Virus record (IMG/VR): IMGVR_UViG_3300035698_007246
Coordinates: 124,001 to 188,000 of that record
Strand: one strand, 5' to 3'
DNA length: 64,000 bases
Each line of letters begins with the position of its first letter. The first letter of the stretch is position 1. Positions 18,796 through 41,835 of this stretch are shown piece after piece. A model generated the notes under the pieces. It was not told the origin of the DNA, made no database searches, and worked only from the letters and a program-made list of their open reading frames with translations. Made by a program: the position numbers and the translations under genes.

Positions 18796-18801
18796 ATATA
18801 A

Positions 18802-18947
18802 AAAAAGAAGTAAACAAATTGATATTACCATTTGGTAGAAAATGTAAGATTTGAACTTACACATATTGCTTTTGAGGCAATTGCTCAACCATTGAGCTTA
18901 TTTTCCGATAGGAAATTTGCTGTAATCAATCTTCATTACTTCTTTTT
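18802..18947 (-). ncRNA. clamp element C enclosing an intact tRNA
   Basis: 12-bp P1 AAAAAGAAGTAA/TTACTTCTTTTT plus clamp consensus. Confidence 0.78.
18833..18906 (-). tRNA. tRNA with CAA anticodon and short variable loop (type I)
   Basis: GGAAAAT/ATTTTCT-A-CCA; ATTGC-CTCAAAA-GCAAT; 4-nt variable loop. Confidence 0.8.
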
Positions 18948-19228
18948 ATTTCTAAATATTTCTTTCTGATATTTTTATCATCACAATCATACATACCCAC
19001 CAAAAAATTTAAAGCTGGATATTTTTCAAAGTCTAAACTAAATCCAACCCATCGAGAGCCTTTTTGTGGTTTAATTCTTTCAGTGACACATTCTTGTCCC
19101 CATTTATCAACAACTTCAATTTTTGTTTTTTTGGATATTCCTTTTACAAAAACTGAAAAGTCATGAAGATAATGACACGTATCTAAAAACTCATCATATT
19201 CTTTTTGATTATCAAATATTATTTTCAT
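18926..19228 (-). CDS. hypothetical protein
   Basis: Follows early promoter; stop TGA inside clamp C. Confidence 0.6.
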   Translation of the reverse strand: MKIIFDNQKEYDEFLDTCHYLHDFSVFVKGISKKTKIEVVDKWGQECVTERIKPQKGSRWVGFSLDFEKYPALNFLVGMYDCDDKNIRKKYLEIKRSNED

Positions 19229-20262: not shown

Positions 20263-20266
20263 ATAA

Positions 20267-20448
20267 AGGAACAAATACAAATTGAATTTGTGATTTAAAG
20301 TCTCACAGACCTGAGTTATTTAAGCTCTCCAGCTATTTGTCTCGGATTTGAACCAAGTAAAATCAGGTGTTGCCACCAGATTTGTTAACCAGTTGTAGAT
20401 ACTTGCGTATCAGCTTTGTTTGCAGTAACCAATTTTCAATTTGCCCCT
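20267..20448 (-). ncRNA. clamp element D with T-loop/elbow-like domain
   Basis: P1 AGGGGCAAAT/ATTTGTTCCT; variant clamp; CTTGG-TTCAAAT-CCGAG. Confidence 0.68.
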
Positions 20449-20463
20449 GTAATTGTATTTATA

Positions 20464-20836: not shown

Positions 20837-20913
20837 TGGTACTGGAGGTGGGACTTGAACCCACAGCCGTACACCGTTTAAAGATGCTGCCTATACCATT
20901 AGACCACTCCAGC
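20837..20913 (-). tRNA. tRNA with TAA anticodon and short variable loop (type I)
   Basis: GCTGGAG/CTCCAGT-A-CCA; GCATC-TTTAAAC-GGTGT; no long variable arm. Confidence 0.75.
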
Positions 20914-20928
20914 ATTTATTTTTGATTT

Positions 20929-21018
20929 TGGAGCACGTGAAGGGATTCGAACCCCCATATATCTAAATGATATCCATTGGATTTGCAGTCCACAGCCTAA
21001 CCATTCGGCAACACGTGC
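20929..21018 (-). tRNA. tRNA-Cys(GCA) with long variable arm
   Basis: GCACGTG/CACGTGC, U73, CCA; variable hairpin ATATC-ATTTA-GATAT. Confidence 0.82.
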
Positions 21019-21207: not shown

Positions 21208-21221
21208 GCTCCTTGAATTTA

Positions 21222-21408
21222 AAAAAGAGATACACAGATTGATGTTTTTAAAGTTTATCGTGCTCTCAGCAGACTGAGCTACCTCCCTGCTTAAACATCT
21301 CTCAAGATATCTAAGCAGGGAGGGTGGGATTCCAACCCACGACCACGGCATTATCAGTGCTTTTTAAAAGTTGTATTTTGCAGAAGTCAATCTTCCGTAT
21401 CTCTTTTT
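21222..21408 (-). ncRNA. clamp element E with circularly permuted tRNA-Ile(GAT)
   Basis: 3' half 21316-21360 precedes 5' half 21259-21288; join CG|GCA gives CGGCA-CTGATAA-TGCCG. Confidence 0.82.
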
Positions 21409-21420
21409 ATGTATTTAAAA

Positions 21421-21525
21421 GTAGTCCTCAAATTGTACTTTGCTCCCTGAGCAGTTATCCCCCATCATAGACACTCCTAAGAATGCCGATGGTGGGGGAT
21501 AACGGAATCGAACCGTTGAGTTTTG
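21421..21525 (-). ncRNA. permuted tRNA-like element with internal CCA
   Basis: AACGG-TTCGATT-CCGTT-ATCCCCC-A-CCA, hairpin linker, then GGGGGAT and TGCTC-AGG-GAGCA. Confidence 0.6.
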
Positions 21526-21629: not shown

Positions 21630-21794
21630 AATAGTCTTTATGGAGTGATTTACAAATTGATATTATTCGTCGCTCTGCCAACTGAGCTACCCCTGCATAT
21701 TGAGAGCAGGGGACGAGAATCGAACTCGTGACCCACGGCTTGGAATGCTAAGATTGCTGTAATCAATCTTCAAAATCACTCTATAAAGACTATT
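21630..21794 (-). ncRNA. clamp element F with circularly permuted tRNA-Gly(TCC)
   Basis: 22-nt P1; 3' half 21705-21748 precedes 5' half 21668-21696; join ACG|GC gives ACGGC-ATTCCAA-GCCGT; U73. Confidence 0.85.
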
Positions 21795-21804
21795 GTAAAC
21801 GAAT

Positions 21805-21879
21805 TGGTACTCGGTAGGGGAATCGAACCCCTGCGATGTGGTCGAAAACCACATGTCCTTGCCGTTAGACGAACCGAGC
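21805..21879 (-). tRNA. tRNA-Glu(TTC)
   Basis: Canonical, loop TTTTCGA, CCA. Confidence 0.9.
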
Positions 21880-21884
21880 ATATA

Positions 21885-21965
21885 AGGAACACAATTTGAT
21901 TTTTAGCTACCTTTGTATTTAAAACAAATGCTTTTTTTGTTTGCTGAATTCAAACTTCAGTTCCC
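21885..21965 (-). ncRNA. clamp element G (minimal)
   Basis: Compensatory TTTGA/TCAAA; insert TTTGT-TTTAAAT-ACAAA. Confidence 0.72.
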
Positions 21966-21974
21966 ATGATTTAT

Positions 21975-22003
21975 AATATAATAAATGACATTTGAAATGT
22001 CAA
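21975..22003 (-). promoter_or_regulatory. sigma70-like early promoter
   Basis: TTGACA-17-TATATT. Confidence 0.75.
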
Positions 22004-22433: not shown

Positions 22434-22437
22434 ATAT

Positions 22438-22530
22438 AAATCGCAACTCAGATTGATGTAAAGCGGTTAAACTTTTCAATAGTTTTGGAAACCTTTTTAG
22501 ATTGCTGAAATCAATCTTCAGTTGCGATTT
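22438..22530 (-). ncRNA. clamp element I (minimal)
   Basis: P1 AAATCGCAAC/GTTGCGATTT; insert AAACT-ATTGAAA-AGTTT. Confidence 0.75.
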
Positions 22531-22611
22531 TCTTTTTCAAAGGATTCTTCAAATAATGTATTTATTAAAATGACTACTTAAAGACTAATTTATGTACCCT
22601 ATTAACTTATA

Positions 22612-22934
22612 TAACGATGATAAATTGCCCTGTTTATAATCTACTCCATCCGATAGGTGCATAGCAGCCATAGTGTGGTCGGCACTTTCTTATGATGTCC
22701 ACACCGTGTTATGATGATTGCTCATCGACTGACACCCCAATCATATCATCGCTTATGAATTTAATAGAATTTAATGATGTCAGGAATTGAACCTCACAAC
22801 AACACATCATTAAATTCTATCGGTGTTATCCATCACCCTATTGAATTTTGCCCCGCCATACATTATCCAGAATCAAGTATGCAGGAAAAACATTCCTGTG
22901 ACCATCGCTTGTACTTTACGTGTCAGCCGGGGCA
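22612..22934 (-). ncRNA. cluster of three candidate structured RNA domains
   Basis: Closed stems at 22612-22755, 22764-22820 (T-loop hairpin), 22849-22934. Confidence 0.5.
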
Positions 22935-23210: not shown

Positions 23211-23294
23211 TGGTAGACGCATAGGGACTTGAACCCTAATTTTCAACAACCAATTACGAATATACTGCTTATGAGGCAGTCTCGGTATACGTCT
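23211..23294 (-). tRNA. non-canonical tRNA(CAT): no D arm, D-loop-like variable arm
   Basis: AGACGTA/TGCGTCT-A-CCA; connector TACCGAG; ACTGC-CTCATAA-GCAGT; variable TTCGTAATTGGTTGTTGAA. Confidence 0.75.
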
Positions 23295-23454: not shown

Positions 23455-23527
23455 GTCCACCACAACGGACTCGAACCGTAATCTTTACCCCTCCACGGGG
23501 CAACATTCTAATTGAACTAACGGTGGA
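23455..23527 (-). pseudogene. atypical His-like tRNA (C73, GTG in distorted loop)
   Basis: TCCACCG/TGGTGGA-C, T arm intact, anticodon arm extended, D loop lacks GG. Confidence 0.45.
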
Positions 23528-23605: not shown

Positions 23606-24147
23606 ATGTATTTATTTCATATTAATAAGATGGATTTATATAACCATATGGAGAATCTCTTCTGTGCGGTCTACTCTCCAGACCAGAACATTGTTATGCA
23701 TAACTCTGTTCATATTCAAGCACCATCCTTTTGAGATGATTGGGAGCACTCATATCATCATTTATTAAATCCACCTAATTAATATGAAATAAAAGAATTA
23801 TCTCTCCACAAAATGATTTCACAACCACTTCCCTCATCGGGAATAAAGGGATTGAAAATCCTAAAATTCCATATTAATGGATTGTTTGGAAACATCGTGG
23901 AACCTGTCCACCACTCGAATGAAAAGCTATTGTAACCAATATTTAAGATGGGTAACCCCACCACTTTTCTAATAAGCAGATATCTCCAAACAACCCTTAT
24001 ATAAATTCTCCCTAAGAGAGAAATTATTTTCGTTTACACATGATTTTTACATCATGTAATGTGCTTTCTTCATTACCCAAAAATGTCAAAGAACTTTATA
24101 GAGTGCGATGTCATTTGACTTTCGCTTCTCTAATTTAAGACCCCTCT

Positions 24148-24305: not shown

Positions 24306-24404
24306 AGCAATTCCACTCATAAGTAACATAAGTCACTCCTTTGTTAGAGTTTTAAAAACTGTTTATTAATCCAAAAATTTCAAAGAACTTATTTTTACAT
24401 CACT

Positions 24405-24433
24405 AATATAATTAATTGTATTGGTGATGTCAA
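24405..24433 (-). promoter_or_regulatory. sigma70-like early promoter
   Basis: TTGACA-17-TATATT; boxA-like at 24378-24388. Confidence 0.75.
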
Positions 24434-24450
24434 GACTTTATTTTTAAATT

Positions 24451-24585
24451 TATATAGCAAGGGGGACTCGAACACCCAGATAACGCCATTACCACGGAAA
24501 TCACAGCTAATCCTCGACTTTGCTTTCGCTTTCAGCACTTAACCCGCCCTCTGTGTAGGTTCACCTGTGCCAGCATTACTATATA
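24451..24585 (-). ncRNA. T-arm-containing structured RNA
   Basis: TATATAGTAA/TTGCTATATA closing stem; GTTCGAGT T loop; GC-GAAA-GC hairpin. Confidence 0.55.
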
Positions 24586-24611
24586 AATTTAAAATTTCAA
24601 AGAACAATACC

Positions 24612-24640
24612 AATATAATTAATTGTATTAGTGATGTCAA
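24612..24640 (-). promoter_or_regulatory. sigma70-like early promoter
   Basis: TTGACA-17-TATATT; boxA-like at 24595-24605. Confidence 0.75.
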
Positions 24641-25824: not shown

Positions 25825-26319
25825 TTATTTTTCTACATCACCTAAATTTTCAAAGAACTTTTTTGCATATTTATTAACATCATCTAAAATATGTGTCCTA
25901 TACCTGCTATGCCAATAACTATGATGTGTTGGACATAATGGTATTAAATTTTCTGGTTTATTATTTTTACTATCACCATCATAATGATGAACTTCAACAA
26001 TTTTATCTTCATCACAAATAATACATTTCTTTTTATGATAAACAAAACATGTTGTTCGATATGCACAATCTTTCCAATTTGGATGATTAGTACCAGTTCT
26101 AAAATATGTGTTTGCACAACCACAAGAACATGTTGTGCCAGTTTTAAAATTTTTAATTGGTTTATTACAAACCGGACATAATTTTAAATTTTTTGGATTT
26201 AAATAACAACTCTCTTCATGTCTTGATAAATTAGCAACAACCCGCTCCTCTTTACACCATCGACATTTTTGTTTTTTAGTACTTCCAAGTTTTAAATTTT
26301 GTAATGAATTGCTATGCAT
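25825..26319 (-). CDS. HNH homing endonuclease
   Basis: KKCIICDE..IVEVHHYDG...NLIPLCPTHH. Confidence 0.88.
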   Translation of the reverse strand: MHSNSLQNLKLGSTKKQKCRWCKEERVVANLSRHEESCYLNPKNLKLCPVCNKPIKNFKTGTTCSCGCANTYFRTGTNHPNWKDCAYRTTCFVYHKKKCIICDEDKIVEVHHYDGDSKNNKPENLIPLCPTHHSYWHSRYRTHILDDVNKYAKKFFENLGDVEK

Positions 26320-28818: not shown

Positions 28819-29505
28819 TTAACAATCTTTTTTAACAGCTTTAAACTTTTCATCAAGATTAACTTCACTTTCTTGACAAAAACTTGCTTTAAGTGAGTCT
28901 GTATCAACACATCTTGCTTGTTTTGAATACATTGATACATTTTGAAATGCACTACGTGTCCCAATATCACTATTAGAATAAGTCACACTGTTGTTTTTAT
29001 CAAATCCCATTGTCCGTCCAACATCAAAAGCGTCTTGGTTTGTTGCAAGATAAATAAACTTCCAATCATGTTCCTTTTCAAAAAAAGAAATTAACTCTTT
29101 AATTCTTGGAGTTGTATATTCTTTACTTGTATTCTCATGACCATCTGTCAATATTGCAACAACAACATTGTCTGGACATTTGTCTTCATCCATTTCAGTA
29201 TGTCTTTTTAATGATTCTGTCAATGTAATACCGATAGCGTCATTAAGAGATGTCATTCCACCCGGAACATATACCGTTTCATCAAGTTCAGGAACTGTAT
29301 TAATATCAATATTTTCATAGATTTTCTCATACCCAGTATCAAATAGAATCAGGCTTACACCAGTATACCCTTCTTCATCTAATTGGTCTTTGATATACGC
29401 ATTATATCCACCGATTGTATCACTTCTCAATCGGTGCATAGAACCAGATTTATCCAAAACACATATTAGTTCAGTTCTTTTTGCTTGGATTTTTTTGACT
29501 TCCAT
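28819..29505 (-). CDS. vWA domain protein
   Basis: VLDKSGSM MIDAS, GMTSLNDAI, ILTDGHEN. Confidence 0.88.
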   Translation of the reverse strand: MEVKKIQAKRTELICVLDKSGSMHRLRSDTIGGYNAYIKDQLDEEGYTGVSLILFDTGYEKIYENIDINTVPELDETVYVPGGMTSLNDAIGITLTESLKRHTEMDEDKCPDNVVVAILTDGHENTSKEYTTPRIKELISFFEKEHDWKFIYLATNQDAFDVGRTMGFDKNNSVTYSNSDIGTRSAFQNVSMYSKQARCVDTDSLKASFCQESEVNLDEKFKAVKKDC

Positions 29506-38163: not shown

Positions 38164-41100
38164 TTAAGCCCCACATCCAGAATATCCACAATCATTACAA
38201 ACAAAACATCCACTTTGCATAGCAATACTATCACTTTTACATGTAGGACATATCATTCCGACTATTGTTGTACCATTATCAATTGTTTCAGATACAAATT
38301 TTCTAATTGCAGTTAATAATGTTGATACATTGTCGCCTTCAATACCTTGTAATGAAACAAGAATATCTTGTCGTGCTATGTTATGTCTCAAACAAAGACT
38401 AACCATTCTACCCAATCTATTTGCATTAGTATCACCAAGGCATTTGTCCCAGGTGTCTTCTACAATCTTAACACTAATTCCACAGTCAATAGCAAGCACA
38501 CATAAACTTTTACAAGCCTTAGTACATGCTCTTGTATCATTTTTAGAATTTGTGTTAATCCACAGTGCCATTGGATACTTCATATCAACATCATCAGGGA
38601 AGTAACTGAAATTAATGTAGAATTTCATCCCTTCACGTTTAATCGTCCTTGTAGGGCCGTTAATGAAGGTCTCAGGGAGTTTTACGCCCTTCTTTATGAT
38701 AGTTTTTTCCTCTTCAGCACTTTCAATCTTAGAAAGAACGGATTCCATAGAACCTGTACGGTATGTTGTTACACCAATGAGTCCTTTTTTCCATGCTTCA
38801 AAATATAATTCTTTAAATTTTTCAAATGAATATTTATTTGGTAAATTTATTGTTTTCGAAACAGACTGATTACAGTAATATTGAACTACTTCTTGAATGT
38901 TAAGATGGTCTTCAATTTCCAAATCATCTGTTGTGACCAAGAAATCAGCTTTCTTATGTTCTGGATAATTTTCAAGAATCCAAGCATAACCATAATCACA
39001 AAGCGTATACATTTCACACAAACCTCTATTATGCGGTTCGTAGTAATATTTTGTTCCTTCATAGTATCCCTCCCAGTAAGTAAAATCCTTTTTCTTTTTT
39101 TCTTTAAGGATTGTTTTTACATTATCGGAATTCATGCCTTCAGGAAAAGCACATATCACTTTTCTCTCAGATTTCAAATCAAACACAGGTTCAATTCCAT
39201 TTGATACATTATCACACACCACAGATGAATTACCTAATGGTGGATTGGTTGTGGTTTTAGCATTTCTGAGACCATATTGTTTAATTAATTCTTTTGTTTC
39301 ATCTGTTAATCTATCAGATTTGAAATAAGGTGTCTGACTAAATAAATCATAATTGTATAATGGGAATGACCCTTTTTCTTTAGCCAATAATGCACTTGAT
39401 TGCATTGTAATGTTTTCCTTAAGTTGTTTAATTTTTTTAGTAAACGTAACAGCTTCTTGTGAGTTATATTTAATACCCAACATAACCAATGTAGAACCTA
39501 ATCCATTAATACCCATACCAAACTGTCTTAGATTTTCTACAGCCCATGCATATGATGGTAATGGCAATTCAGTCAAATCACACACATTATCTAACATTCT
39601 TGAGTATGTAACGATGTCTTTTTTATACAATTCCAAATTAAAGTATGGAACATCATTACGGATTTCTACATACATTGTCAAATTAAGTGAACCTAATAGA
39701 CACACAGTAGACATTATTGGATTACCTGGTATCTCACCACATCCTCGACTCACATACCCTTCGGTATTCCAATCATCAGCAGTTGGTTCATGCAAATCAT
39801 AAACATCACCAAATCCAAGAAATTCAATTTCTTTTATTTTAGTTTTCCACTTATTTCCTGTTAATGATGTAGTTTTGATAATTTGTTTTAATTTTTCATT
39901 TTTTTCATCATGACTAAGTTTATGTACAAATTTATAAAAATTTAAAATTGAATCATTATCAATAACACCTTCAAAGATATCATGCCGCCTCACAACATCA
40001 CGTCCATATATTTTTGCTGTCTCACCTTTTTTACCACACAAATATTTCTTATAATCACACCCTGCGGTAAGCATTATATGTTTTACCAATAAATGTAATT
40101 TTTCTGATATATTTTTAAATCTAACTTGTGGATATCGAGAAGTTAAATTCACATTCCCATCAGATGAAATTAACCCATCTATCAATCCAGATAAAAAATC
40201 ATCATTAAAGTTTAACAATTTCATAACATCAAAATTGGATTTATCATTAGCATCAATACCGAAAACATCAAATAATAGTTTAATCTTCCCTTCGGTATTT
40301 ATAGCATAATATCTCTCACAATTTCCATCAGATTTATCGATTCTATAATCAAAACCAAACCTGTTATACAATTCAATTATATAATCATTATTTTCATTTG
40401 AATCTGTTGATATATTAAAGTTTTTATAATTAGAAAAACATCCATCTCCAAAATATAATCCAAATAACATTCCAACATCTCTGATGTCGAATAGTTGCTC
40501 GCCATTTATAGCATCAACAGATATTACGCCATTATCCACACATGATGGATTATACTTAATCATATCATAAGGTTGTTTTCTTACGTTATCACCAACATTT
40601 AAATATTTTAAACGTGTGTTATTGTCCCACCGTTTTCTATTTTCTGATGTTCCATTTTGAGTATGAAAAATATGACCTTCAGTTACACCCTGATAAAACC
40701 CATCTGTGAAATGAACTCTATAAATTGGCTGATTTTCATGAACTTCTATATTATCAACACTACCATGCCCTAACGTTGTTTGAATTTCTTCACCGACTTT
40801 TACATCTTCAACTCGTTTTAGTCCGTGTTTAGTAGCTACTAATGTTCCTTTTACAACACAAGGATTTGTAGCATTACATTCACCCAAATAGAGAATTGGG
40901 TTGTTTTTATTCATGTTATCAACGAATACTATACCCGGTTCAGAGCGATTGTATGTAGATTTCATAATAAGGTCGTAAAGTTTCTTAGCTTTCACACGTT
41001 TTACTACTTTACCATTCCATATTAAGTCCCACATAGCATTATCAGCAACAGCATTCATGAAATCATCACTCACTGCAACACTCATGTTGAATTTAGTTAG

Positions 41101-41835
41101 CTTACCAGACTCTTGTTTTGCTCTAATGAACTCTTCAATGTCAGGGTGCCATACAGAAAGACATCCCATCATAGCACCTTTACGTATATCTTTATCACAT
41201 TCACCAAAATATTCTTTAAGCTCTTCAACAGAAGCATAGTTTTTTAATGAATCAAGGTATCCATCATTGTCACCTTTAACAATACAGTCAGAAACCTTGT
41301 CCCAAATCTCCATATAAGAGATAACTCCGGGGTGTCTAACACCAGTTCCTTTGATTAAACTACCACGAGGTCGTATAAAGTCAAAGTTTATTCCATACCC
41401 ACCCTCGGAAGCAAGAGTTTTTGCTTGTTCCATGATAGATAAGAAGATGTTTACGAGTTCATCTGGTGTATCAGGTGTAGTGATTATTATTTCATTCTTG
41501 AAATGTTCATTCTGTCTTATGTATTTTATAATGGCATTACTAACAGGACCATTAATAAAACAGTTCATTAGTGTAGCATTGTAATAATCAGTTCCTATAT
41601 TGGTTGTAATTCTACCACCCGGTGAACATTTAATACCTAATGGATTCCCCATACTATCAAAACGTATCATTGTTTCAAGAAAAATGGGATACCAATATTC
41701 AGAATCTACTTCATTATTAGCAAGTGCCCTTGCTATTCTTTCAAATGTCCCAAGGGGGGTCTCACCATCATACTGATATTTTCCCTTCCAATTATTATAT
41801 GCAATTTTCGTTTTGAAAAAGTTTTCATCACGCAT
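38164..41835 (-). CDS. nrdJ: class II (B12-dependent) ribonucleotide reductase with intein
   Basis: PGGR, NCF, GGYG.NF..IRPRG, GAMM, NP|CGE, SNGIEP, QSVSKTIN, C-terminal Zn ribbon. Confidence 0.92.
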   Translation of the reverse strand: MRDENFFKTKIAYNNWKGKYQYDGETPLGTFERIARALANNEVDSEYWYPIFLETMIRFDSMGNPLGIKCSPGGRITTNIGTDYYNATLMNCFINGPVSNAIIKYIRQNEHFKNEIIITTPDTPDELVNIFLSIMEQAKTLASEGGYGINFDFIRPRGSLIKGTGVRHPGVISYMEIWDKVSDCIVKGDNDGYLDSLKNYASVEELKEYFGECDKDIRKGAMMGCLSVWHPDIEEFIRAKQESGKLTKFNMSVAVSDDFMNAVADNAMWDLIWNGKVVKRVKAKKLYDLIMKSTYNRSEPGIVFVDNMNKNNPILYLGECNATNPCVVKGTLVATKHGLKRVEDVKVGEEIQTTLGHGSVDNIEVHENQPIYRVHFTDGFYQGVTEGHIFHTQNGTSENRKRWDNNTRLKYLNVGDNVRKQPYDMIKYNPSCVDNGVISVDAINGEQLFDIRDVGMLFGLYFGDGCFSNYKNFNISTDSNENNDYIIELYNRFGFDYRIDKSDGNCERYYAINTEGKIKLLFDVFGIDANDKSNFDVMKLLNFNDDFLSGLIDGLISSDGNVNLTSRYPQVRFKNISEKLHLLVKHIMLTAGCDYKKYLCGKKGETAKIYGRDVVRRHDIFEGVIDNDSILNFYKFVHKLSHDEKNEKLKQIIKTTSLTGNKWKTKIKEIEFLGFGDVYDLHEPTADDWNTEGYVSRGCGEIPGNPIMSTVCLLGSLNLTMYVEIRNDVPYFNLELYKKDIVTYSRMLDNVCDLTELPLPSYAWAVENLRQFGMGINGLGSTLVMLGIKYNSQEAVTFTKKIKQLKENITMQSSALLAKEKGSFPLYNYDLFSQTPYFKSDRLTDETKELIKQYGLRNAKTTTNPPLGNSSVVCDNVSNGIEPVFDLKSERKVICAFPEGMNSDNVKTILKEKKKKDFTYWEGYYEGTKYYYEPHNRGLCEMYTLCDYGYAWILENYPEHKKADFLVTTDDLEIEDHLNIQEVVQYYCNQSVSKTINLPNKYSFEKFKELYFEAWKKGLIGVTTYRTGSMESVLSKIESAEEEKTIIKKGVKLPETFINGPTRTIKREGMKFYINFSYFPDDVDMKYPMALWINTNSKNDTRACTKACKSLCVLAIDCGISVKIVEDTWDKCLGDTNANRLGRMVSLCLRHNIARQDILVSLQGIEGDNVSTLLTAIRKFVSETIDNGTTIVGMICPTCKSDSIAMQSGCFVCNDCGYSGCGA
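39742..40860 (-). mobile_element. LAGLIDADG intein in nrdJ (373 aa) ending in Gly
   Basis: Starts CVVKGTLV after NP; LIDGLISSDG; ends YVSRG before CGE. Confidence 0.85.

Follow-up and report, generated by a model that had tools for sequence, protein, structure and literature searches.

The locus considered here raises the question of why a complete tRNA gene should lie inside a pair of long inverted arms, and whether the tRNA is an ordinary decoder flanked by a hairpin or a passenger in some other folded RNA. The preliminary description, made from the sequence alone, held that the arms (clamp C) enclose an intact, non-permuted tRNA with a Leu anticodon but a type I body, that the clamp is independent of permutation, and that the tRNA may be charged with another amino acid or serve as a decoy. 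We find that what was observed is correct, while the interpretation placed on it is supported only in part. Clamp C turns out to be one copy of an undescribed family of folded modules in the tRNA gene arrays of a few T4-like phages. The modules carry nothing, a tRNA look-alike or, here, a whole tRNA whose anticodon differs in the one comparison that exists, so that our reading, held tentatively, is of tRNA-shaped cargo rather than a normal leucine tRNA.

Clamp C and its setting

The window, meaning the whole 64,000-nt stretch analysed, is bases 124001-188000 of a 223,879-bp virus record that is about 91% complete. It has about 30% G+C and nearly all genes lie on the minus strand. It carries a T4-type replication module (UvsX-like recombinase, gp43-like polymerase, DnaB-like helicase, primase and SbcCD-like nuclease), and also encodes a dNMP kinase, a Mom-like protein and a PIF1 helicase. 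Since the polymerase is only 30-33% identical to those of cultured T4-like phages, this is a distant T4-like phage, and a search of cultured phages found no relative of the region and no clamp. All 27 tRNA genes of the genome lie in the window at 1.8-26.6 kb on the minus strand. Identical DNA is present in contigs from four salt-lake samples of 2017-2019, where comparison of contigs showed only strain variation. All 12 sequencing runs that contain the stretch are DNA, from salt-lake metagenomes, so that expression of anything described below is inferred from sequence.

ARAGORN calls a 74-nt tRNA at 18833-18906 (-) with anticodon CAA, a 4-nt variable loop, G1.U72, A73 and an encoded CCA. Rfam tRNA scores it 68.1 bits, the second best in the window, and taken alone it folds as a cloverleaf. 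Position 8 is A, not the near-universal U, a detail absent from the preliminary description. The outer stem is exact, with the 5' arm AAAAAGAAGTAA at 18947-18936 (-) pairing over 12 bp with the 3' arm TTACTTCTTTTT at 18813-18802 (-). Within it the 5' core at 18917-18935 (-) has a bulged U, then GA, then the inner-helix strand AGAUUGA, then the unpaired conserved UUACAGCAA, and the 3' core at 18814-18822 (-) has the 7-bp inner-helix partner UCAAUUU followed by unpaired G-U. Between core and tRNA are a leader AUUUCCUAUC at 18907-18916 (-) and a trailer AAUGGUAAUA at 18823-18832 (-), whose GGUA can pair with the UACC 3' end of the tRNA. The whole 148-nt module, 18801-18948 (-), folds at -40.4 kcal/mol with z = -5.8, and 0 of 200 shuffles were as good.

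A canonical 84-nt type II tRNA-Leu(CAA) is present at 8572-8655 (-), with an Rfam tRNA score of 53.3 bits and a Leu-family acceptor and T arm, which makes the clamp C anticodon redundant. The variable loop of the clamp C tRNA is not the long arm of bacterial tRNA-Leu, but the argument that a type I body excludes leucine is weak in this system. The phage's own Leu-family tRNA(UAA) at 20837-20913 has the acceptor stem and T arm of its type II Leu tRNAs with a shortened variable arm, and E. coli LeuRS is not known to need the long arm, relying on A73 and tertiary features rather than on that arm or the anticodon. The clamp C tRNA has A73 and an A15:U48 pair. It does not, however, show kinship with the three Leu-family tRNAs of the window, since its acceptor is GGAAAAU instead of GCNGGAG and its D arm differs. 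A plain alignment search for its closest paralogue gave no clear parent isotype.

A covarying family of clamps

The 18-mer at the 5' side of clamp C, GAAGATTGATTACAGCAA, occurs 8 times on the minus strand between 17.2 and 22.5 kb with up to 3 mismatches, against 0.14 expected, and nowhere else in the genome. Every copy has the same plan: an outer stem of 8-12 bp whose sequence differs from copy to copy, an internal loop with N-G-A on the 5' side and G-U on the 3' side, a 7-bp inner stem, an unpaired N-U-W-CAGCAA, and a loop. Pattern scans of IMG/VR found the same module in other viral contigs, to which we refer as L007 and L028 (one contig), L011, L014, L018, L021, L022, L032, L040 and L261, always inside or beside tRNA arrays and on the tRNA strand. 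Confinement to a few phage arrays holds as far as these scans reached, and rarity is provisional because they were pattern-based. A wider but not exhaustive viral scan for other clamps with an intact tRNA added only L261, with two permuted-cargo copies. In bacterial genomes at least 120 hits were returned, and none of the 120 had the helices, an absence that is likewise provisional.

To ask whether the helices are maintained, we aligned ten cargo-free copies without reference to a structure (alignment A2). On A2, 85% of cells pair against 62% in shuffles, 15 of 17 pairs carry changes on both sides, and sliding the partner columns drops pairing to 30-45%. A covariance model built only from these ten (R1) finds clamp C full length at 40 bits, E = 1.5e-7, together with three permuted-cargo copies not used to build it. 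Over ten sources, R1 finds 28 copies across nine viral contigs at E < 0.01. On their alignment, which is fitted to the model and so favors pairing, 92.3% of cells pair against 64% in shuffles, again with changes on both sides in 15 of 17 pairs. No shuffle of 500 reaches this and slid controls stay at or below 45%. The inner helix is 98.9% paired with 5 of 7 pairs changed on both sides, its top four pairs switching between GA/UC, GU/AC, GG/CC, AA/UU and CA/UG.

G.U pairs outnumber A.C mismatches 12 to 2 in the fourteen inner pairs, and every copy runs in the same direction as the tRNAs, which together point to an RNA read from the tRNA strand. Covariation alone cannot tell an RNA hairpin from a single-stranded DNA hairpin, and the arrays are plastic and carry HNH endonuclease genes, so a DNA-level element such as a hairpin recombination or transposition site, or the remnant of a mobile cassette that shuffles tRNA genes, has to be considered. 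We regard it as very unlikely, since terminal repeats of mobile DNA keep their sequence whereas these arms differ in every copy, G.U pairs are favored on the tRNA strand only, no flanking direct repeats were seen, and the 120 bacterial hits included no true copy.

The loops of the window copies are of three kinds. Two are empty and A-rich: the clamp at 22435-22533 (-) with a 45-nt loop, directly upstream of tRNA-Ala (R1 78.9 bits; a row of A2), and the clamp at 21878-21972 (-) with a 41-nt loop, directly upstream of tRNA-Glu (R1 72.7 bits). Five have a tRNA-like cargo in which the T arm and 3' acceptor strand precede the 5' acceptor strand and D arm. These are 21639-21785 (-), with variable region, T arm, closed 7-bp acceptor and D arm (R1 38.3 bits); 21221-21409 (-), with a hairpin in the acceptor loop (R1 43.3 bits); 17112-17265 (-) (R1 44.6 bits); 17269-17611 (-), with a long 289-nt cargo that has an insertion in the acceptor loop and only a partial R1 hit; and 20264-20451 (-), a divergent copy (GAAAATTGGTTACTGCAA) whose cargo contains a T arm, which was a pattern hit with 3 mismatches, whose helices were found by script, and which R1 does not reach. 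The remaining copy is clamp C. The independence of the clamp from permutation, as had been claimed, is therefore supported, the same covarying clamp enclosing permuted cargo, an intact tRNA, or only 30-45 nt of A-rich loop.

At the gathering cut-offs, Rfam finds only tRNAs in the window, and no known ribozyme or other family matched the core at E up to 5. With relaxed thresholds, the Y RNA-like family YrlA matches the permuted cargos at 21665-21737 (36.7 bits, E = 2.8e-5), 21243-21369 (30.7 bits, matching the full model) and 17119-17228 (19.3 bits), all below the cut-off of 69 bits. Relatives give 31-43 bits, the best being 43.4 in L011, and clamp C itself gives no YrlA hit. The alignments cover the variable region, T arm, closed acceptor, U8-A9 and D arm, and then only a 3-4 bp stem (ACG/CGU) that leads outward into the clamp. 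Hence these copies are not split tRNA genes, and a reading of them as permuted or split genes that are circularized and re-cut into working tRNAs, with the clamp bringing the ends together, is very unlikely in spite of the order of their halves. Joining the ends restores neither a 5-bp anticodon stem nor a 7-nt loop, there is no bulge-helix-bulge motif, and empty and intact-tRNA copies share the same clamp. No RNA ligase or splicing endonuclease turned up among the proteins examined, in a survey not aimed at them.

Another possibility is that the clamps punctuate the array transcript as processing, stabilizing or terminating hairpins, for example RNase III sites like those of T7 early RNA, with the loop contents incidental. 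The helix is about 20 bp, coaxial, with an internal loop; clamps sit directly next to tRNAs; U-runs follow some 3' arms, that of clamp C among them; and a strong promoter-like site lies directly upstream of the clamp at 21972. But RNase III would not need an invariant unpaired U-W-CAGCAA or the fixed GA/GU loop, cargo when present is always tRNA-shaped, and the clamp C linkers are conserved. A promoter and terminator scan gave counts near those of shuffles and did not call the clamps as terminators. We consider this reading unlikely.

The orthologue of clamp C and the proposed role

Three viral pattern scans and one metagenome scan turned up one orthologue of clamp C, at L007:3378-3525, plus L049, which is the same phage; all other hits were chance matches in coding DNA. 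The L007 copy sits in the same gene order, with tRNA-Met upstream and tRNA-Asn directly downstream, and scores 50.1 bits with R1. The outer stem differs at 6 of 12 pairs and the T stem at 3 of 5, all compensated, and the inner stem has a U-A pair where the window has A-U at its top. The acceptor stem, D arm and anticodon stem are identical. The leader is identical at 9 of 10 positions, or 13 of 14 counting the core, whereas the flanks of eight other orthologous tRNA pairs share only 3-8 of 14. The UACC/GGUA pairing is kept, with the trailer differences falling in the loop between. In both orthologues, the lowest-energy fold of the whole module puts the two acceptor strands into small leader and trailer hairpins, the leader being predicted to pair with the 5' acceptor strand, while each tRNA taken alone can form the cloverleaf, as the lowest-energy fold for the window copy and as the centroid fold for L007. 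This alternative fold is a prediction only.

Against this conservation, the anticodon loop reads CUCAAAA in the window and CUACAAA in L007, that is, CAA against ACA. L007 has U8 where the window has A8, as does a co-occurring related strain from the same lake (sample X1), which shows 6 differences over 18865-18935, the number expected for the L007 type. L007 encodes CCU rather than CCA. At 84% identity, this tRNA is among the better conserved of the orthologous pairs, which range from 70 to 95%. Selection thus keeps the tRNA shape and its attachment to the clamp but, in this single comparison between the only two distinct sequences, does not keep the anticodon.

The suggestion that the tRNA is not an ordinary Leu decoder and may be a decoy therefore gains support, from the anticodon and not from the type I body on which it had been based. 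The competing reading is of a working tRNA, leucine-accepting or otherwise, released by RNase P and 3' trimming, with the clamp only helping to cut it out of the array transcript. The high tRNA score, the encoded CCA, A73, the cloverleaf and the compensated T stem favor it, and the tRNA could still be matured and charged. On the other side are the changed anticodon (and an A34 anticodon is odd for bacteria), A8, the Leu(CAA) already present, an acceptor and D arm unlike the Leu family, the existence of empty clamps, and the other 26 tRNAs of the array, which need no clamp. If LeuRS charged it regardless of anticodon, the ACA orthologue would put leucine at cysteine codons, which again argues against decoding. 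We consider this reading unlikely, though not excluded.

Our preferred explanation, in which we have less than even confidence, is that clamp C is one copy of a multi-copy structured RNA module specific to the tRNA arrays of a small clade of distant T4-like phages, that the invariant core (GA/GU loop, base of the inner stem, U-W-CAGCAA) is a handle bound by an unidentified protein, and that the loop is the cargo. The cargo would be nothing, a tRNA mimic without an anticodon arm, or in clamp C a complete cloverleaf attached through conserved linkers at its acceptor end. In this view clamp C would be a Y RNA-like particle whose effector module is a complete tRNA, and the tRNA is kept for its shape, to engage, sequester or recruit tRNA-binding enzymes, and not to read UUG as leucine. 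What the analysis establishes is the fold, the multi-copy family with its covariation and strand bias, the optional and tRNA-shaped cargo, the evolution of clamp C as a unit with its tRNA, the conservation of the linkers, and the non-conservation of the anticodon within the limit just given. Transcription through the clamps, binding of a protein, engagement of tRNA-binding enzymes and any charging are inferences, as is the fate of the tRNA, which may be freed by RNase P and 3' trimming to leave a nicked clamp, as happens to Mycobacterium smegmatis YrlA (PMC4201824), or may stay tethered by the leader and trailer pairings.

No partner protein emerged from our searches. TROVE/Ro60 (PF05731) was absent from the 224-kb genome, which is about 91% complete, and from five related records, one of them a complete 113-kb phage, although control genomes gave hits. 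RRM_1 was absent from this genome, and a weak VWA hit at 28819-29505 is below the cut-off. By synteny, a 142-aa ORF at 17909-18337 lies beside clamps in three contigs, with no family or fold lead.

The role of tRNA arrays in large phages is debated between codon supply and escape from tRNA-cleaving defenses, and these findings show a group of T4-like phages mixing real tRNAs with a second, undescribed class of predicted folded RNAs that display tRNA shapes on a conserved putative handle. If they are made and bound by a protein, they would be phage-borne tRNA mimics of the Y RNA kind that do not depend on a phage-encoded Ro protein, and clamp C would show that a whole tRNA can serve as cargo. 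They are also a warning for annotation, since an anticodon read by a tRNA finder is not proof of a decoder.

Comparison with known RNAs

Phage T4 rnaC and rnaD (species 1 and 2) are small stable RNAs of unknown function inside the tRNA cluster of a T4-type phage, next to the dNMP kinase region as here, and rnaC carries a T arm. They have no clamp core, R1 with filters off giving nothing better than 13 bits in the T4 region and nothing on rnaC or rnaD. The circularly permuted tRNA genes of Cyanidioschyzon merolae also have the 3' half before the 5' half and flanks that pair, but restore an anticodon loop through a bulge-helix-bulge cut and ligation.

The core most resembles the dictyostelid Class I RNAs (RF01414). 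Two compact empty copies in L028 score 38.2 and 33.1 bits against a cut-off of 41.5 (E = 9e-4 for 49 kb against all families), while the window's own empty copy scores only 18.3. The Rfam consensus reads GaUcuC-CUUACAGCAA-(A/U-rich loop)-GagAuC-UG and the phage copies read GAUUCA-AUUCAGCAA-(loop)-UGAAUC-UG. Kjellin et al. (PMC7919456) describe a 6-bp end-joining stem kept by compensation, an unpaired 11-nt motif next to the 5' stem strand (CCUUACAGCAA, with U, C, C, A, A nearly invariant), a variable loop, and conserved flanks, AAG at the start and CUGU at the end. The phage profile has a compensated stem, an unpaired N-U-W-CAGCAA after it with U, C, G, C, A, A in 27 of 27 copies (some of these positions were fixed by our filter), GAAG before it in 26 of 27, and a YUGU 3' flank in which the U after the G, not fixed by the filter, is present in 25 of 27 and the first base is C in 21 of 27. 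Both are multi-copy per genome. The phage spacer is one base shorter, the stem is 7 bp instead of 6, and the phage copies add an outer stem and may carry about 100 nt of tRNA-like cargo, with cargo of up to 289 nt. Class I RNAs are 42-65 nt with their own DUSE promoter and were reported as not found outside Dictyostelia, while the phage genes lack DUSE. The resemblance is strong feature by feature but sub-threshold, is compatible with descent, transfer or convergence on a similar partner, and does not supply a function, that of Class I RNAs being itself unknown; it does offer a second system in which to ask what the motif binds. A more speculative and unlikely possibility is that the two are the same kind of handle, related by descent or transfer or shaped by the same kind of binding protein. 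This would take Class I RNAs out of their supposed restriction to social amoebae, and clamp C, with its free-to-vary anticodon, would act as a tethered decoy or bait for host tRNA-targeting enzymes such as anticodon nucleases.

The cargo most resembles that of YrlA-type bacterial Y RNAs (RF02553; Chen et al. 2014, PMC4201824), which also occur in phages. Their ends pair into a long stem with a conserved protein-binding site, and the distal module mimics tRNA with a variable region, T arm, closed acceptor stem and D arm but no anticodon arm, as is the case for the sister clamps at 21639-21785, 21221-21409 and 17112-17265. YrlA aligns to the cargo of at least seven clamps, only over the tRNA-like part and at 19-43 bits. 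The stem motif here is UGAAGA...CUGU, which only loosely resembles the Ro-binding GNCGAAN0-1G near the YrlA 5' end, and YrlA is encoded within a few kb of a Ro60 gene, whereas the clamps have none nearby or anywhere in the phage and are set as 8 copies inside a tRNA array. Y RNAs give a precedent for combining a protein-binding stem with a tRNA-like module in either orientation. In Deinococcus radiodurans Yrn1, according to the same paper, the module has a 6-nt "anticodon" loop, no variable arm and a poor D arm, and clamp C holds a full cloverleaf with CCA. The Yrn1 module is joined to its stem in the non-permuted orientation with an anticodon-like arm, and this is the topology of clamp C.

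Unusual tRNA calls

The tRNA called at 9485-9560 on the minus strand has the anticodon CUA, which ARAGORN labels 'Pyl'. This is a tRNA of the amber-suppressor type, and it hints at TAG read-through or recoding in part of this phage's genes. At 20837-20913 (-), there is a 77-nt tRNA(UAA) with the acceptor stem and T arm of the phage's type II Leu tRNAs, but with a shortened variable arm, making it a second 'short' Leu-anticodon tRNA, in this case one that does not sit in a clamp, as we call the paired RNA module. At 20929-21018 (-), there is a 90-nt tRNA-Cys(GCA) with a long, type II-like variable arm and U73, and a similar one is found in the viral contig L011 at 10779-10869.

There are also 3 minus-strand tRNA calls on which the 2 programs disagree. 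Those at 12579-12658 and 23214-23294 are found by Rfam only, at about 35 bits, while the one at 23455-23526 is called by ARAGORN and is borderline in Rfam, scoring 29.2 bits against a cut-off of 29. The related phage, represented by L028 and L007, carries further odd tRNA calls, at L028 3826-3903 and 3914-3994 and at L007 3420-3493: one with a 2-base 'anticodon', Tyr(AUA), and the orthologue of clamp C, the module enclosing an intact tRNA, with the anticodon ACA. A34 anticodons are unusual for bacteria.

Elements without the clamp core

At 21452-21517 (-), there is a T arm, followed by a 3' acceptor strand ending in CCA, a linker, and a 5' acceptor strand. This stretch hits beta_tmRNA with 40.1 bits and permuted tmRNA with 27.2 bits, both below their cut-offs, and it looks like another permuted tRNA-like element, although one without the clamp core. 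Full tmRNA genes are carried by the viral contigs L018 and L032. Other long inverted repeats, with arms of 19-37 nt placed 115-173 nt apart, are found at 22599-22767, 23611-23793, 24394-24640, and 1477-1645, in the 4.5-kb ORF-free stretch at 20.2-24.6 kb and near tRNA-Ser. They lack the clamp core and probably represent further structured RNAs.

Reading frames and a promoter-like site

The best sigma-70-like site of the region, at 21975-22003 (-), consists of TTGACA, a 17-nt spacing, and TATATT, and ends a few bases before the outer stem of the clamp at 21878-21972. A 142-aa ORF at 17909-18337 (-), with no family match, lies next to clamps here, in L007 (4358-4726), and in the viral contig L022 (13648-13986). 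A 100-aa ORF at 18926-19228 (-) has its last seven codons and TGA stop running through the 5' arm and core of clamp C, but since it has no family match and no homolog in L007, it may not be a gene.

At 38164-41835 (-), there is encoded a 1223-aa ribonucleotide reductase large subunit whose matches fall in 2 separated blocks, residues 215-288 and 688-1222, a pattern suggesting an insertion such as an intein. Inside the tRNA array, HNH endonuclease-like ORFs are found at 12049-12429 and 25825-26319 (-), with copies in the arrays of L007 and L011; T4 likewise has the homing endonuclease segB in its tRNA cluster.
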